A program made the translations under genes and the position numbers. A stretch of 64,000 bases of DNA from contig MU626300.1 of the NCBI GenBank assembly GCA_025603075.1, positions 62,001 to 126,000 of the forward strand, read 5' to 3'. The notes beneath the pieces are model-generated. The model made no database searches. It worked only from the letters and a program-made list of their open reading frames with translations, and was not told where the DNA came from. Positions 8,609 to 63,817 of this stretch are shown one piece after another. Position 1 is the first letter of the stretch. Every line of letters begins with the position of its first letter. This stretch comes from Neoconidiobolus thromboides FSU 785. Lineage: Eukaryota; Fungi; Entomophthoromycota.

Positions 8609-9483
8609 TTACACTAAATAATCGGCAGAAAAGTAGCCAATGATATCATTACATACATCCTCTTCTAATGGACAATCTAATAACTGAGGTTTAGTAGCAG
8701 TAGCTAAATTATATACATTAGAAATGCTTTCTCCAAGAACTAAAGACTCTAAAGTACAAACGTTAAAAGGGAATAATATATTAATACCAAAGTACCATGA
8801 TCATTTGTACAATTACTTTCATTTAGTACTAAATCAAAAGAGGATTTTATGATTTTTTTAATTTCTGATTTTGATAAATAATCAAACTAATGATTTTAAT
8901 AAATTAATGAATTTAATATATTGAAATACCAATTCACCATTTTGAAAAGAACTTGAGTTCACTATAATACTTTGTATTATCTCTTTTACATCATTTATAT
9001 CATTTAGTAGCATTAATTTATGCCCAAATTGACAATTAAATAACCTTAATATTTAGCTTAATTCAACAATAATTATATACTTTAGCTCAAACTCAGTTAT
9101 ACTTTCTAGACTAAGTTCATTGTTCAATAAAACAAATACAACTTTATCGAAGTTCGTTGCGTAGTTTAACCTGATCCCTAAAATTAGTATAATTTCATCA
9201 AATTAGATTTACATTTCATCAATTTTATTGTCTCTTTTCAAAATATAAAGTGCGGTATTATGATTGTCAAGGTAAATATCCTAAAATTATTTCAGTTTAA
9301 ATTTTAAATATAGTAATAGTACTAAACTGGTTTAATCTCACTTTCAGTGGCTACAAAATAGTTAGAGTAGTTTTTAGAATATGTGATTATTTTATTACTA
9401 TACTTCACATTCATTATAGTATCCTTTTGAAGCTCATTGAGCCATTTCTGTTTGGCTGCCCATCCTTTGACTCTAATATTCAT
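8609..9483 (-). CDS. 203-aa XPF/ERCC4-family non-catalytic subunit-like protein (SPO16/PTD/FAAP24-like), 7 exons
   Basis: Exons 9483-9399, 9350-9328, 9280-9213, 9170-9081, 9044-8930, 8886-8796 and 8748-8609 join in phase through six GT-AG introns (612 nt). The family call rests on recalled motifs: KW..L...PDIYLDNHNTALY (FAAP24-like) and NDHESLVLGESISNVYNLATATKPQLL...IIGYF (PTD/SPO16 HhH2-like). Confidence 0.7.
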
Positions 9484-9616
9484 AATTTCAATATAAAACA
9501 GTTATTACCTGTTTTAAATTATAATGTCTAAATATAAATACAATAAATGCAAAATTTTTAGCATTAAAAGTGATGAAAGGGTATTAAAAATAAAAAAGAA
9601 TTATATCAGTTTAATA

Positions 9617-10827
9617 TTATTGTATACTTATAGATGTAAGGTTCGAATTTAACTCATGTTCATCTTCATTATCCTAAAACGATAATATTAATAAAAATGA
9701 AGAATGCTAATTAATTTATGTTACCATAGTTGGAGTATTAATAAAAGTAAAAAATAAATATCTTTCCCATAAAGCTAATTTTGCTTTAGATTCTGGAAAT
9801 TTATTATACTTTGAAGAGATTAATTGCCAAGTAGCTAAGCCTTGTCTTGCTACAATCTATATTAAAAATAGAACATGCATTAAATAGATAGTCTTACTTA
9901 AGAATAAATGAAACAACAATAAATACAAGAGTGCTAATAGTCCACCAGTAGCTATAATTGTCAATATAAAAATAAAACCAGAAGTAATATGAATTATAGA
10001 GTCTGGTGCTCCATTATTTATATTATATGATTTAATTACTAAAAATTTACTATAGCTTAAATATTTAAACTAATATATCCAGCTTACTTTGGTTAGAAAG
10101 ACCTTCATAATCAGCTATCATATAAGATGTTAAATACCACCCTAAACTTGATGCTACCATAAGGAATAAGCAGCTCGATGCAATTAAATAGATGAAATAT
10201 CTATTTTGTAAAATTGGCTTTTATTTAGCTTTAGAGAATAAATGAATACCTATAATTTGTTTTTCCAATGCAGTTATTTAGCCAGATACAATGATGATCC
10301 ATTCCTTCAATACATTTATTACAGCTGTGGCAATGGTAAGAACATTCTTTACTATGAAAATATTACATTAAATAAACAAGGGTTATTATAATGTTATTAC
10401 AAGTATCCTTCACAATAGGAGCAAAATGAATTGTTTGAATTATTATCAGATATACTTAATATGGCCTTGATATCTAAAGGTTCGTCATTATCCGAACTAA
10501 ACAAATCACCGGTAGCAACGGGATTTGAAAAGGAACATAACAAACTTAATACGATAATTCCTATACTTAAAGAAACCATAAGGTAATATAAAGTTAACGA
10601 TGATAATTATTGCAAATATTCAACGCTTTATACAATTTGACATAAATTGAATCTTATGATCTTAATAAAAAGGATATAATTTGTAGTATAGTATTCGCAT
10701 TAACAACTAATGGTTTGATTAAGAAGAAGTAGTAATAAATCATTAATAGTTTAATGGCCCAATTGCTAATAAACAAAGGGTGATATGGTGGTAGTAGGCC
10801 ATTACTTCTTCTCTTTCGGTCATTCAT
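9617..10827 (-). CDS. DHHC palmitoyltransferase (ZDHHC1/11-like N-terminus), 289 aa, 7 exons
   Basis: Exons 10827-10678, 10582-10401, 10351-10250, 10200-10088, 10038-9898, 9849-9725 and 9673-9617 total 870 nt. The product contains FCSYC...[31 protein letters not shown], an N-terminal RRSNG..PPYHPL and 4 TM segments. Confidence 0.93.
10583..10677 (-). other. U12-type (minor spliceosome) AT-AC intron, 95 nt, intron 1 of the DHHC gene
   Basis: 5' end ATATCCTTT; branch-like TCGTTAAC at 10600-10593; 3' end TAC. Phase 0 at both ends restores the frame, and I found no plausible GT-AG alternative. Confidence 0.88.
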
Positions 10828-14562: not shown

Positions 14563-15924
14563 TTAAATACCATCTACATGGGGCCCATGAGGAACTATTG
14601 GGTTTATACCTCTAGTAACAGAGCAAGAGTTATTATTGCCAAAATCGCAATAAACTGCACTAGAGCCATTGTATTTACAAGTAGTTCCCGATGCACATTG
14701 GCGTAAAAGCCATTTTCCATTATAACATAATGCATAACTGTTTCCATTACAAGAATAATACCCCTCATTACTGCAGGAATTTCCGTTAATTGGGCAAGTT
14801 CCAGGAACAGAGGTGGTTGTGGTAGTGGTGGCACTAGTGGTAGTTGAGGTAACTGGAGGATTAGACGTTGAGGTAGCAGTAGAGGTAACTGGGGGCTTAG
14901 TGGTTGAAGCGGTGGTAGAGGTAACTGGAGGGGTAGAAGTAGAAGTAGGGACAGTTCCTCCACAAGTTCCTTGGGCTAAGAAACTGGCTACACTCTGTCC
15001 AAAGCTACCATTATTATAAACTTGAGAAGCATCCCAAAACATTAAACCACCAAAATTTGGATATTGTGAGCGCACCTGTGATACTTTTGAAGAAATAGTG
15101 CCAGCATCGACGTAACCATTATTGGCACCTGTTTGGCCACCTGGTAAACCTACGTATAATTTCACATTCTTATTGACAGCAGTATTCTTTGCCCAGTTAT
15201 CCCAGTCAGCATAATTAAATTGAGCGTTCAAGCCACAATAATTATTATAGAATTGAATAAAAACCATATCAAACCATGCGCTATTTAAAACAGGACCGAG
15301 ATAGCCATCTGGGAATGGACATTGTGGGGCAGCAGCAATATAGTACTTCTTAGAAGGATCGCTTGCATATAATCCACGTAACTCATTAATGAACGCAGTA
15401 TATCCAGTTGAAGAACCACCTTCAATATCTAAATCTACACCATCTAATACTGCATCACCAAATGGTCTATTTGTAGTTGTCCCTTTAAATAAGGAATCCC
15501 AGATTTGACGAGCAAAGTTTTTACCATCAGCATCAGACCCAAAACCATATGAACCAGCAGCTCCTCCCAATGACATTAAAACAGCAACGCCTTTGGATTG
15601 ACAGTATTTAATATCTGCACCAATGGCAGGACAAGTTAAGAGATCTGTACCAGGGAATGTAGTTTCACATGCACTGCTAAGATTAATCAATGGCGTATTT
15701 TTTCCATTAAAAACGTGCATGAATGATAAATTAACGAGAGACACTCCAGGCTGATCACAATAATATTTTAGTGGCTTTTGAGCATTTCCATCGTTTCCAT
15801 GAGTAGCACCATAGGAATTTTGCCCCCAATAGAGTACTAAATTACTATTACAATTGACGTTAAAAGCATCAATTGCTGAACCAGAAAGAGCTAAACTTAA
15901 AACAAATGTAGATATGAATTTCAT
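14563..15924 (-). CDS. Secreted GH18 class III (CTS1-like) chitinase with Ser/Thr linker and C-terminal Cys-rich chitin-binding (CBM19-like) module; intronless
   Basis: Signal peptide, YWGQN, SLGGA, catalytic DGVDLDIE, AAPQCPFPD, QFYNNYC, GG.MFWD. Confidence 0.95.
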   Translation of the reverse strand: MKFISTFVLSLALSGSAIDAFNVNCNSNLVLYWGQNSYGATHGNDGNAQKPLKYYCDQPGVSLVNLSFMHVFNGKNTPLINLSSACETTFPGTDLLTCPAIGADIKYCQSKGVAVLMSLGGAAGSYGFGSDADGKNFARQIWDSLFKGTTTNRPFGDAVLDGVDLDIEGGSSTGYTAFINELRGLYASDPSKKYYIAAAPQCPFPDGYLGPVLNSAWFDMVFIQFYNNYCGLNAQFNYADWDNWAKNTAVNKNVKLYVGLPGGQTGANNGYVDAGTISSKVSQVRSQYPNFGGLMFWDASQVYNNGSFGQSVASFLAQGTCGGTVPTSTSTPPVTSTTASTTKPPVTSTATSTSNPPVTSTTTSATTTTTTSVPGTCPINGNSCSNEGYYSCNGNSYALCYNGKWLLRQCASGTTCKYNGSSAVYCDFGNNNSCSVTRGINPIVPHGPHVDGI

Positions 15925-29179: not shown

Positions 29180-29903
29180 ATGTAATAATTAAGCAGATTG
29201 TATGAAGCAAGATAAAAAACTTACACAATTAACGGATCATATAAAAAAACTAATAAAAAATAAATTTATTATTTACTTATCAGTGTAAAATCTGGTACTC
29301 AGTGGTTGAAGTCAAAGGCCTTAGTTTACGTAGCTAATGTAGGCTTAAATTATGAAGAATAAGATGTAATAGGCTATAAACTATGTAAGATAAATAGAAT
29401 AGACAACACTACTGCAAAATCTATGTAAAATTCTATTAGTAAAATTTAATGGCTTTATTAAAGGTGAGAGTATCAGGGAGCAATTCAATTAGAAAGCCTC
29501 GAGTTATTGTGTTAAAGGATTTTTTTATACTCCAACAAGTATGGATATCAAAATGAGAAGTATAATATTCTTTGCGATGTAGAGTTAGAAATTCTTATAA
29601 AAAATCAAAATAAAAGCTTGGGATTGATTGTGTGTAAACTCAAGAACACAACAACTTAAGTGATTGTTATGTTATAATCAATTATAAAGCTGATAAAGCA
29701 ATATTTCACAGCAATTATAACAAAAAATAGCTGTTGTTATGTTTTTTATGTATAGCTACCTAATTGAAATATATATATCCTTAATATGTTAATTTAGAGC
29801 CTTTTGTTAAATTGTTTTTTAATATTATATCTTTTAATAAAAATACCAGATTTTATAATAATATGTTTTATTTTATTTGTTTTATATAATTTATAACTTA
29901 TAT

Positions 29904-37993: not shown

Positions 37994-39142
37994 ATGAAGT
38001 TAGCCTTTCTATTCTTAGTAGTCTTATTATATTGCAATGCAATCGCAGGTCAATTCCTACCCAAAACGTTTGTAATTAAATTCAAGGATGATATGTTAGG
38101 CTTAAACCTTCATCAAGCCATCAGTAATACTTTGGCGCCATTGAAGCATTTAATATTTGGACGACCCGAAGTTAGAAACATTTATAGCCATATTTTTAAA
38201 GGGTTTTCAGCTCACATGCCCGCTTTTTTAGTAGATAGGATTAAAAAATTACCACTAGTTGATGTAATTGAAGAAGACATGGTCATCAATATCAATGATT
38301 TTCAAATGAACGCGCCTTGGGGTTTGGCTAGGATTTCCCAAAGGGAGCCTATTTCAAATAACAAAACAATATATAAACATAGCCCTAATGGTGGCGAAGG
38401 TGTAGCTGTTTATGTCATAGATACCGGGGTTCGAATCACTCATGAAGAATTTGAAGGAAGAGCTGTGTTTGGAAAATCATTTACAGAAGGTAGTAATACA
38501 AGTGATGAGAACGGTCATGGTACCCATGTAGCAGCTACAGTAGCAGGAAAGACATATGGAGTAGCCAAAAAAGCACAAATTGTAGCCTTAAAAGTGTTTG
38601 ATGCTAGTGGTACTGGATCAACATCCGATATTATATCGGCGGTTGATTGGGCAGTAAAAGATAAACGAGGTAAAAATGGGAATGTACTTAATATGAGTTT
38701 GGGTGGTGGATTTAGTATGCTTCTTAACTTTGCCGTTGAAAAGGCTTACCGTAAAGATTTTGTAATAGTTGCTGCAGCTGGTAATTCGGATCAAAATGCT
38801 TGTTTTAATTCACCTGCCTCTAGCTTTAATGTTATTACCGTTGGAGCTACTAATATTACAGATCATCGAGCTTATTTTTCAAACCACGGTAATTGCGTTA
38901 ACGTGTTTGCCCCAGGGCAAAATATCCAATCGGCTTGGATTGGTAATGATAAAGATACCAAAATTATTTCAGGAACCTCCATGGCTTGTCCACATGTAGC
39001 TGGATTAGCTGCTTATTTTTTAAGTCAAGAAAAACTAAAAACATCACAAGTAGCTAATAAAATCAAAAAATTGGCTACTAAAAAAGTAGTTAAAGAGGAG
39101 GGTTTCCTATCGCCAAATATATTAGTATATAATGGCGAATAA
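37994..39142 (+). CDS. Secreted subtilisin-like serine protease (S8A, proteinase K type) with I9 propeptide
   Basis: Signal peptide, APWGLARIS, catalytic YVIDTG, NGHGTHVA and SGTSMACPHVAG. Confidence 0.96.
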   Translation: MKLAFLFLVVLLYCNAIAGQFLPKTFVIKFKDDMLGLNLHQAISNTLAPLKHLIFGRPEVRNIYSHIFKGFSAHMPAFLVDRIKKLPLVDVIEEDMVININDFQMNAPWGLARISQREPISNNKTIYKHSPNGGEGVAVYVIDTGVRITHEEFEGRAVFGKSFTEGSNTSDENGHGTHVAATVAGKTYGVAKKAQIVALKVFDASGTGSTSDIISAVDWAVKDKRGKNGNVLNMSLGGGFSMLLNFAVEKAYRKDFVIVAAAGNSDQNACFNSPASSFNVITVGATNITDHRAYFSNHGNCVNVFAPGQNIQSAWIGNDKDTKIISGTSMACPHVAGLAAYFLSQEKLKTSQVANKIKKLATKKVVKEEGFLSPNILVYNGE

Positions 39143-53615: not shown

Positions 53616-53687
53616 TTCTTCATGGTCCAGTGGTTAGGATTTTCCGCTTTCACCGGAACGGCCGGGGTTCGATTCCCCGTGAGGAAG
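53616..53687 (+). tRNA. tRNA-Glu(UUC), intronless
   Basis: Acceptor stem TTCTTCA/TGAGGAA, anticodon stem TTCCG/CGGAA with TTC at 53649-53651, T-loop GGTTCGATTCC, downstream T-run near 53709. Confidence 0.97.
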
Positions 53688-55210: not shown

Positions 55211-55741
55211 CTACAATAATAAATAACTCAAGCTCATCCTTGTCGTATGTTTGGCCGAAGAAGAATGTAAAGGAGAGATAGCATGATCTGTTGCATTAGA
55301 GTTTGTTTCAAAATTACTTTGTGATAGTAAGGAAGGAGAAGAATTCAAATTATTACTGTTGATTTCGGATGATAAACTTGAGTAAAGCTTTAAGAAATAA
55401 GATGGTTCAATAGTACTTATCCATTGAAGTCCAGTATTTATTGGTATTAGCTTTGTCTTTTTCTTATCTCTAGATCGTCGATTTTGAAACCAAATTTGAA
55501 ATTCTCTTGGATCCATTTGTAACTGCTGTGATATCTGTTTTCTAGCATCTTTACAAGGATATGGGTTAAGTTTATAGATTGATTCTAATACCTTACGTCT
55601 CTCTTCTCTCAAAATTTCTCTGATATTTGTTCTTTTGCTATTATTAATATCTTTACGATCCTTCTTTCTATTGCTATTACTATTAAGGATGGATGAAAAA
55701 CTACAAGCGTAAGCTTTATAACTTTTGGTTGATTGTATCAT
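55211..55741 (-). CDS. Homeodomain transcription factor 2 (intronless; first ATG at 55741)
   Basis: RRKVLESIY..NPYP...RKQISQQLQMDPREFQIWFQNRRSR. The ORF-track start at 55834 is a TTG upstream of a TATA-like box. Confidence 0.88.
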   Translation of the reverse strand: MIQSTKSYKAYACSFSSILNSNSNRKKDRKDINNSKRTNIREILREERRKVLESIYKLNPYPCKDARKQISQQLQMDPREFQIWFQNRRSRDKKKTKLIPINTGLQWISTIEPSYFLKLYSSLSSEINSNNLNSSPSLLSQSNFETNSNATDHAISPLHSSSAKHTTRMSLSYLLL

Positions 55742-56627
55742 ATCCTGTGATGAATAAATAATAAAGATAATGTTTTTTTTAAAAGTGGATCTTATTTTTG
55801 AACTTAATTTATATACTTTTCTTAAGAATCCCAATTAATAATAAATCATTTTATATCATAGTTTGCTTTTAGGTAACAAGGTGGTGGCAACTAGAATTCT
55901 TATTTGGGCTAAAAATAGACAAAGATTCTATTACGTGGGAGTGTTTAATTTTACACTACTAGGTTATTGTTTTCAAAGTGAACAACTATTTATTATCTTA
56001 AAATTTTGACTTTATTATTAATTCTTTTTATCTCTTGATTTGTAATTGCAAATAGTTATTTAATAATATTACTTTTATTTGAAGTTAATATTAAAGTAGG
56101 CTTTATAAAATTACATCTATTCATAACATATTTTAAAGTCCTTTGAGATCTTTAATAACGTAAATATTGTGTTATAAAATTGTTATCATAAAGAAATAAC
56201 TTTTATTTTATTTATTTTATTTTATTTTATCAATTTAATCTTAGTTTACTATTCGTGATATAAATGTTGAGCAATTTTAGATATTTATGCAGGTTCAATA
56301 ATCGATGGGTGTTTAACCTTTTGACCAGTAAAGGTAATCTGTATTACATTCTTAATATAACAATTTAATATCAATATCAATGAGTTACCCAAATAAAGCG
56401 ATTAACGAGTGACTACATGATAACAAAACTAATATTTAAAAAGTATGGGATAAAAAATTGTTTCATTTGGTTATATAAAAAAGCAATGATTTAGTTTTTA
56501 TAATTAGGTAAAGGAACTATTTTTGCTATACTTACAATAAATTAAGCTATTATTTAAAACATTTTAATATTTTATATTATCTCAATATTGTTTTTTTTAT
56601 AAATTTTGAAAATAATATAGTTTATAT

Positions 56628-62176: not shown

Positions 62177-63817
62177 TTAAAAACCATGCATTAAATCTAA
62201 AGTAGAGATATCGTTATTATCAAAAGTAAAGCCTAAATTTTTAGCTAATTCCTGATTTAAATAATTTTCATTATCAAATAAATTTAAATTCCAGTTCTGA
62301 AATTGATGATTATCATTATCATTGATTTGAGCTAATTCAGGTGTAAATGAGGAACCTTCAGTTTCAGAACCAGAGTTATTATTATGACCATTGTTATTCT
62401 GAATATTCATATTCTGTCCATTGCTTTGTGTATTGTTATTTAAATTAGTAATGATTTCTCCTTTACTATTTAAATGCTCAGGGTGATGTAAAGCTAAATG
62501 TTGAGCTAATTGATCCTTACGATTAAAAGTCCTTGGACATTTCTCATGTGGACATGGATTTGGATGTTCATGAGTTTTATGATGTCTTCTTAATTGATCA
62601 CTTCTTTTAAAGGCCCTACCGCAGTATTCTACTTGACAAACATGGGGTCTTTCATTTGGATCAATAATTGTATTCATTTTATTTAACTTTGGTGGCATTG
62701 GGTATGGGCTTAAATCTTTCATCATATTATGACGAAGCATACTTGGTTTGTTTCCCATAGTTAAAAAAGGTTCAGGATTGAAGCCCATAAAGGGGTGTTG
62801 GGCTATTGGACTATCAAAAGGTAAGTTGGTAAATGAATTACGATTCAAGTCCATACTTGGAGACATCATATCAATTGTATTTAATTCATCGGATAGGGAA
62901 GGTGATTGAAATAAATTATTACAAAATAATTGTTGTGGTGAATAATTCATAAAGGAGCGAGTTAATAATGGATTATCAAAAGGTAACATGTATGACTGTG
63001 GTGGAGTAAATGGATTCATTTCCCATGGATAAGACATAAATGCTAAGCCACTTTGTTCTATTAATTGACGTTGTTGTTGTAATATATTGTTGTTGTTTCC
63101 TGGATTTAAGGAAGCATTGTCATAAATTAAATGTTGATCAACTCTCTTTGGTATACCTGAATGAGCTAACGGATGTCTCTTGCTTTTAGTACTACTATTG
63201 TTATTATTAGCACTATCTAGATTTTCCATTTCTTCTTCTTCTTCTTCTTCGTCATTAATATTACTGTTAGTATTAACATCTTCGGTAGTAGGTTCAGTAC
63301 CCATACTTTCTCTTTTTAAATCTCTTTCTAAAGCATCAATAAATAGTCTATCATGAGGGACAGAATACCAAAAGAATACTTTTTGTTTCTTTTGAGTTCT
63401 AATACAATTACTTCTATATAACATTTCTAAAAATTCACTTCTAGGTTCTTCTAAAATAGCATCAATACCAGGTTTTAAGTTTCTTAAATCACTAAAGATT
63501 CCTTCTTCAAATTTTTTAAAGTTTTTTACTGGTCTTCCATAACATTCAAAACGATAAACCAAACTACGTACAATATCGGTACCTGTCATAAAAAATAGTG
63601 AATTCCATAAGATACAACTGATAGCTTCACCGTTATTCAATGGAAATCTTAAAATTGGATTTTCAATATCCCATTTACTTGGTGCATTTAAAAAGAAATC
63701 TTTTAAATTTTCGACTTTGGTCATATTATCCTCTTTATTAATATTTTCTTCGACTTGTTCTTCTTTAATTGTATGTGCTTCTTCATTTTCATTGTATAAG
63801 TTTAAAAAGTAGTTCAT
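62177..63817 (-). CDS. STE12: STE12-like transcription factor (STE domain plus two C2H2 zinc fingers), intronless
   Basis: FFLNAPSKW...ISCILWNSLFFMTGTDIVR...KKFEEGIFSDLRNLKPG...CIRTQKKQKVFFW.SVPHDRLF.DALERDLKRE; two C2H2 fingers near the C-terminus. Confidence 0.95.
   Translation of the reverse strand: MNYFLNLYNENEEAHTIKEEQVEENINKEDNMTKVENLKDFFLNAPSKWDIENPILRFPLNNGEAISCILWNSLFFMTGTDIVRSLVYRFECYGRPVKNFKKFEEGIFSDLRNLKPGIDAILEEPRSEFLEMLYRSNCIRTQKKQKVFFWYSVPHDRLFIDALERDLKRESMGTEPTTEDVNTNSNINDEEEEEEEMENLDSANNNNSSTKSKRHPLAHSGIPKRVDQHLIYDNASLNPGNNNNILQQQRQLIEQSGLAFMSYPWEMNPFTPPQSYMLPFDNPLLTRSFMNYSPQQLFCNNLFQSPSLSDELNTIDMMSPSMDLNRNSFTNLPFDSPIAQHPFMGFNPEPFLTMGNKPSMLRHNMMKDLSPYPMPPKLNKMNTIIDPNERPHVCQVEYCGRAFKRSDQLRRHHKTHEHPNPCPHEKCPRTFNRKDQLAQHLALHHPEHLNSKGEIITNLNNNTQSNGQNMNIQNNNGHNNNSGSETEGSSFTPELAQINDNDNHQFQNWNLNLFDNENYLNQELAKNLGFTFDNNDISTLDLMHGF

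Follow-up and report, generated by a model that had tools for sequence, protein, structure and literature searches.

An AT-AC intron of 95 nt (positions 10677..10583, minus strand, phase 0) in a ZDHHC1/11-like palmitoyltransferase gene of the insect-associated fungus Neoconidiobolus thromboides FSU 785 is, with a probability that we put at roughly 0.9, a genuine U12-type intron. The gene lies within a 64,000-nt stretch of contig MU626300.1 of assembly GCA_025603075.1 (hereafter, the window), to which all positions refer. The initial annotation, made from the letters alone, had proposed that a minor-spliceosome AT-AC intron is required for expression of a DHHC palmitoyltransferase, and this proposal is borne out by the splicing signals, by the exact RNA junction in three sequencing runs, and by animal genes that have a U12-type intron at this site.

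The 5' splice site, ATATCCTTT (10669..10677, minus strand), begins directly after codon 50 and matches the U12-type consensus, /RTATCCTTT (PMC3584512), at nine of nine positions. Toward the other end of the intron, the branch-point sequence TCGTTAAC (10593..10600, minus strand) departs from TCCTTAAC by a single mismatch, a G in place of the consensus C, and is followed by 10 nt (TTTATATTAC) to the intron end. This spacing places the branch A ∼12 nt from the 3' splice site, for which the optimum distance is 11–13 nt (PMC3584512). A distinct polypyrimidine tract ahead of the 3' splice site is not a feature of U12-type introns; here, only CTTTATATTAC separates the branch site from the 3' splice site, and T-richness is uninformative at a GC content of 26.5%. 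The intron closes with the terminal AC at 10583..10584 (minus strand), placed by both the sequence and the RNA joint, and its termini are thus an unmixed AT...AC pair, which reads GT..AT across the joint on the plus strand. From ATATCCTTT onward, the unspliced frame meets a stop seven codons after codon 50, and the gap contains stops in all three frames. Excision of the 95 nt joins NANTILQI to LMVSLS in phase 0 (exon flanks ...CAAATT and CTTATG...). Upon re-reading, the coordinates and sequence statements of the initial annotation for this intron proved exact and correct.

RNA evidence was drawn from Logan contigs of three runs, X1, X2, and X3, which derive from two studies and carry two organism labels. 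The 10678/10582 junction, for which the initial annotation had suggested an RNA test, is present as an exact joint in all three runs: it skips precisely 95 nt, with GT..AT on the plus strand (AT..AC on the gene strand). No letters at the joint fit on either side, i.e., there is zero microhomology, which argues against an artefact of template switching or microhomology. Additionally, contigs that end at 10582 have the overhanging letters AATTTGTAG, identical to the final bases of exon 1. The same contigs confirm all five neighboring introns of the gene, each with GT-AG termini and a length of 48–51 nt. Within exon 1, RNA contigs cover 10678–10810; the ATG at 10827, 17 nt beyond, is uncovered.

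Unspliced RNA is also represented. Unitigs that span the whole AT-AC intron without a gap occur in X1 at a depth of 951, compared with 1250 for the joint, and in X2 at 10.5, compared with 26 for the spliced form, although these are k-mer depths of assembled contigs, which are a crude measure and a poor gauge of intron retention. Such unspliced contigs occur for the AT-AC intron only; the five GT-AG introns have zero coverage (the binned depth is exactly that of the exon overlap), and intergenic DNA is likewise uncovered in the RNA contigs. Because neither the GT-AG introns nor the intergenic DNA are covered, the unspliced form represents RNA rather than DNA contamination. U12-type introns are known to be removed more slowly (PMC3584512), and the retention pattern fits this behavior and weakly suggests that, of the six introns in the gene, the AT-AC one is probably slower to be spliced than the five of the U2 type. 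That minor splicing limits expression of the DHHC enzyme is hinted at by the restriction of unspliced contigs to this intron.

Several other features of the RNA contigs at this locus were recorded. In X2 and X3 (organism B), two of the GT-AG introns (10352–10400 and 9673–9723) show variant joints, in which 50 or 52 nt are skipped and an additional G is present, beside the reference joint, and exonic single-nucleotide differences are present in these runs (95–99% identity). The most likely source of the variant joints is variation between alleles or strains at the exon edge, and not alternative splicing. In X1, a contig of 2121 nt runs unbroken from the final exon of the DHHC gene, whose stop is at 9617, across a spacer of ∼133 nt into the next gene on the same strand (ATG near 9483), covering 9399–9672 and continuing downstream to ∼8609 (minus strand). 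The same contig contains the next gene's own joint at 9350/9399, which reads CT..AC and corresponds to a GT-AG intron. A contig that spans both genes could stem from read-through or from transcripts that overlap, or else from assembly across tightly packed genes.

Motif content by itself does not distinguish the intron from the background of this AT-rich DNA. In the 64-kb window (26.5% GC), RTATCCTT occurs six times, compared with 8.3 expected, and the combination of a donor, a branch site with no more than one mismatch, and the matching end dinucleotide occurs twice, compared with 1.18 expected from first-order Markov shuffles of the window. As the U12 motif set is no rarer than chance, the argument from motifs alone was dropped; what sets the intron apart from chance is its precise exon context, together with the junction in RNA and the U12-type intron at the orthologous position in animals. 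The second motif set in the window, GTATCCTT ... GCCTTGAT ... AG at 10403–10479 (plus strand), is antisense to DHHC exon 2 and was judged to be a chance match, and it illustrates how readily U12-like motifs arise in an AT-rich genome. Three occurrences of ATATCCTT, at 29775 (plus strand), 53010 (plus strand), and 55562 (minus strand), were rejected for want of exon context. The last of these falls within the coding sequence of an open reading frame at 55211–55834 (minus strand), which encodes a homeobox-like WFQNRRSRDKK segment, and does not mark an intron. The remark that no other such intron was traced holds for the window, where the remaining motif sites lack exon context or match by chance.

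Other ways of repairing the reading frame were enumerated, including GT-AG, GC-AG, and alternative AT-AC pairs, and all of them either delete transmembrane segments or lack RNA support. The assertion that no plausible GT-AG pair repairs the gene is therefore right in substance, but not to the letter: frame-preserving GT-AG and GC-AG pairs do exist, but every one removes 206–398 nt, transmembrane segments among them. None of these frame-preserving alternatives were seen in the RNA contigs.

Removal of the AT-AC intron and the five GT-AG introns (48–51 nt) yields a protein of 289 aa that ends at 9617. Exon 1 (10678..10827, minus strand; 50 codons, with its ATG at 10827) encodes an N-terminal motif of 11 residues and the first transmembrane segment (TM1). 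Exon 2 (10401..10582, minus strand), which is supported by RNA and translation, encodes TM2, a linker, and the start of the Cys-rich domain, and also holds an ATG at 10579. The DHHC catalytic core (PF01529) is encoded by exon 3 (10250..10351, minus strand; RNA and translation), which is flanked by GT-AG introns at 10352–10400 and 10201–10249 (minus strand), both observed as RNA joints. The remaining exons, 4 through 7, are located at 10088–10200, 9898–10038, 9724–9849, and 9617–9672 (the last including the stop) on the minus strand, as defined by RNA joints and translation. The product matches the Pfam DHHC family (PF01529) with 109 bits, compared with a cut-off of 28.7, and has an intact D-H-H-C motif, present as MDHHC at residues 128–132. 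Kyte-Doolittle peaks at residues 24–42, 47–65, 147–165, and 205–223 predict four transmembrane segments, with the DHHC motif (beginning at residue 129) between TM2 and TM3. This two-plus-two arrangement is obtained only with exon 1, and without it a single transmembrane segment precedes the DHHC motif. The motif that follows TM4 (exon 6, 9724–9849; residues ∼234–243) reads A-T-W-Q in the fungus, without an acidic residue, compared with S/T-T-[YF]-[DE] (TTxE-like) in animal ZDHHC1/11.

Elsewhere, the window has ordinary fungal gene content. Intron-less open reading frames encode a STE12-like transcription factor (STE and C2H2 domains; 62177–63817, minus strand), a GH18 chitinase with a CBM19 domain (14563–15924, minus strand), and a subtilase (37994–39142, plus strand), and there is one tRNA gene (53616–53687, plus strand).

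In profile searches, the named proteins nearest to the 289-aa product are ZDHHC1 and ZDHHC11, with an identity of only ∼30–35% to any relative found. An initial homologue search returned mostly Erf2-like paralogues from Mucorales and one Logan open reading frame, which were of no use for comparing introns, and no fungal orthologue with at least 40% identity was found in the homologue searches. The fungal and animal proteins share an N-terminal motif, NG-x-S/L-x-P-x-HP (family form NG[WF]SxPxHPxQ). The description of the gene as ZDHHC1/11-like agrees with the named matches, this shared motif, and shared intron positions; it is an assignment by matches, motif, and exon-intron structure.

The initial annotation had also suggested checking whether the intron position is conserved in ZDHHC1/11-like orthologues. 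With four relatives placed on their genomic loci, a U12-type intron was seen at the same site and in the same phase in three animal genes. In the ZDHHC1-like gene of the bryozoan Watersipora subatra, intron 1 begins act/GTATCCTTA and carries GCCTTAAC followed by 13 nt to AG. Intron 1 of ZDHHC1 from the fish Lampris begins att/GTATCCTTG, and intron 2 of ZDHHC11B from the rhinoceros Diceros begins ggt/GTATCCTTT and carries TTCCTTGAC followed by 12 nt to AG. The remaining introns of these three genes are ordinary GT-AG introns. The U12-type intron has phase 0 in the fungus and in all three animals, and in each the P of the [N/D]P that closes TM2 comes exactly 21 codons after it. Upstream of the junction, the stretch back to the HP motif is shorter by one residue in the fungal protein, and the alignment places the fungal junction one residue off, corresponding to a one-residue indel in TM1 or the adjoining loop.

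The flanking U2-type introns provide a further comparison. Fungal introns 2, 3, and 5 occupy the identical alignment column and phase in all four genes (phase 2, 19 codons before the D of DHHC; phase 2, 15 codons after; and phase 1, after FH-x-[FY]-L), such that, together with the AT-AC intron, the fungal gene shares four of its six intron positions with the animal genes. A fifth intron of the fungal gene agrees with the animal genes in phase, but the loop in which it falls aligns poorly. The minor-intron genes tabulated by Olthof et al. (2019; PMC6717393 supplement) include mouse and human ZDHHC1, ZDHHC11, and ZDHHC11B, with GCT/GTATCCTTG and the branch-point sequence GAGTCTTTAACC for ZDHHC1, and with GTATCCTTT and the branch-point sequence T[GC]TTCCTTGACA for ZDHHC11/11B. 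The rhinoceros ZDHHC11B words match those listed for ZDHHC11, and the fish ZDHHC1 donor matches the word listed for ZDHHC1. Relatives from a plant (Stephania) and a green alga (Apatococcus), for which orthology is uncertain, lack an intron at this site, and none of their introns is of the U12 type.

Judged by its site, phase, and signals, the fungal intron is the orthologue of the known minor intron of animal ZDHHC1/11. Because it shares its site with the GT-AG U12-type intron of the animal genes, we infer that it is ancient and predates the fungus-animal split; the position is established for four genes, and the age is deduced from it.

Removal of this AT-AC intron by the major (U2-type) spliceosome is very unlikely given the presence of both U12 motifs, with ATATCCTTT at the 5' end and TCGTTAAC ∼12 nt from the 3' splice site, and given that its animal orthologue is listed as a minor intron and shows textbook U12-type signals with GT-AG ends, even though some AT-AC introns are of the U2 type (PMC3584512) and no minor snRNA gene lies within the 64-kb window, for which an Rfam search returned one tRNA match and zero snRNA genes.

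A second alternative concerns the coding consequence of the intron. The deposited model, a "zf-DHHC-domain-containing protein" of 238 aa (10579–9617), equals the C-terminal 238 residues of the 289-aa model; it starts at a Met one codon into exon 2, and thereby omits exon 1, TM1, and the conserved N-terminal motif. The expectation that standard predictors would truncate this gene is thus realized in the public record. Were the deposited model right, the protein would start at the ATG at 10579, exon 1 would be a 5' leader or upstream open reading frame, and the AT-AC intron would lie in the 5' untranslated region, without coding consequence. The GenBank annotation of a product from 10579 and the end of the RNA contigs before the ATG at 10827 are in keeping with such an arrangement, which we nevertheless regard as highly improbable: the NG-x-x-x-P-x-HP motif and TM1, both supplied by exon 1, are conserved in animal ZDHHC1/11, and the exon is joined in frame; the shorter protein would retain one transmembrane segment before the DHHC motif, against the four-TM topology; and the spliced mRNA has an in-frame upstream ATG at 10827, which scanning ribosomes would use. 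Readthrough of the in-frame TAA, or a pseudogene broken after codon 50, would accommodate the early stop, seven codons after codon 50, and the existence of unspliced RNA, but merits almost no credence in view of the spliced junction in three runs, and because readthrough cannot reach the DHHC frame across the gap, whose 95 nt are not divisible by three and hold stops in all frames.

For the favored reading, a U12-type intron that interrupts the coding sequence, the course of splicing can be outlined from the established U12 pathway. U11, and later U6atac, would pair with the 5' splice site ATATCCTTT, and U12 would pair with TCGTTAAC, with one G-G mismatch relative to the usual consensus partner, leaving the branch A bulged ∼12 nt from the 3' end. 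Excision, as seen in the RNA, joins exon 1, with the N-terminal motif and TM1, to exon 2 in phase 0, and gives a four-TM DHHC enzyme of 289 aa. The signals and the accurate excision together point to a dependence on U11, U12, U4atac, and U6atac, which would be at work in this fungus.

The fungal intron is of the AT-AC subtype, and every animal orthologue examined is GT-AG. Switches between minor-intron subtypes are a known phenomenon (PMC2831892). N. thromboides might have systematically converted ancestral GT-AG minor introns to AT-AC, an idea that we consider doubtful. If such a conversion did occur, it would represent a lineage-specific shift in the preference for minor 5' and 3' splice sites, perhaps tied to the AT-rich genome or to a modified minor spliceosome, and the strong retention confined to this intron would mark a regulated step that is rate-limiting for the enzyme. 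An apparent excess of AT-AC introns may instead be a matter of ascertainment, as GT-AG U12-type introns leave gene models unbroken and go unnoticed.

Minor introns in non-Dikarya fungi are already established, and ZDHHC1/11 are already listed as minor-intron genes; the understanding of the mechanism of minor splicing is unchanged by this work. The practical value lies in re-annotation, since the public gene model can be corrected from a 238-aa protein that misses TM1 and the conserved N-terminal motif. Furthermore, an RNA-verified minor intron is added for Entomophthoromycotina, for which none was found reported in the literature searched; in that search, no paper was found that pairs Conidiobolus with minor splicing. 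The ZDHHC1/11 minor intron would be at least as old as the common ancestor of fungi and animals, with its subtype changed and its position kept. It is also clear from this case why minor introns are under-counted in genomes of this kind when a census relies on annotation.

Compared with the animal ZDHHC1/11 minor intron, the fungal intron has the same 5' splice site core, TATCCTT, and a TCCTTRAC-like branch site 12–13 nt from the 3' end, and its flanking U2-type introns share positions and phases with those of the animal genes. The two differ in their termini, as the bryozoan, fish, rhinoceros, mouse, and human genes all have GT-AG where the fungus has AT-AC, and in length, which is 95 nt in the fungus, and ranges from 287 nt to 10 kb in animal ZDHHC1/11. 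The proteins differ as well, in that vertebrate ZDHHC1/11 have a long C-terminal tail, and the fungal protein is without one. Among fungi, minor introns are documented in Zoopagomycota and Glomeromycota, with ∼205 in Rhizophagus irregularis and ∼249 in Basidiobolus meristosporus, and Basidiobolus (Zoopagomycota) has the highest reported density, according to the accessible portion of Larue and Roy (2023; PMC10639083), which makes no mention of N. thromboides. Unlike annotated fungal minor introns, the ZDHHC1/11 intron is missing from public annotation, and annotation-based surveys would miss it. Similar to these early-diverging fungi (Rhizophagus and Basidiobolus), N. thromboides belongs to a non-Dikarya lineage that has kept U12-type introns with animal-like signals, some of them conserved with animal minor introns (PMC10639083).
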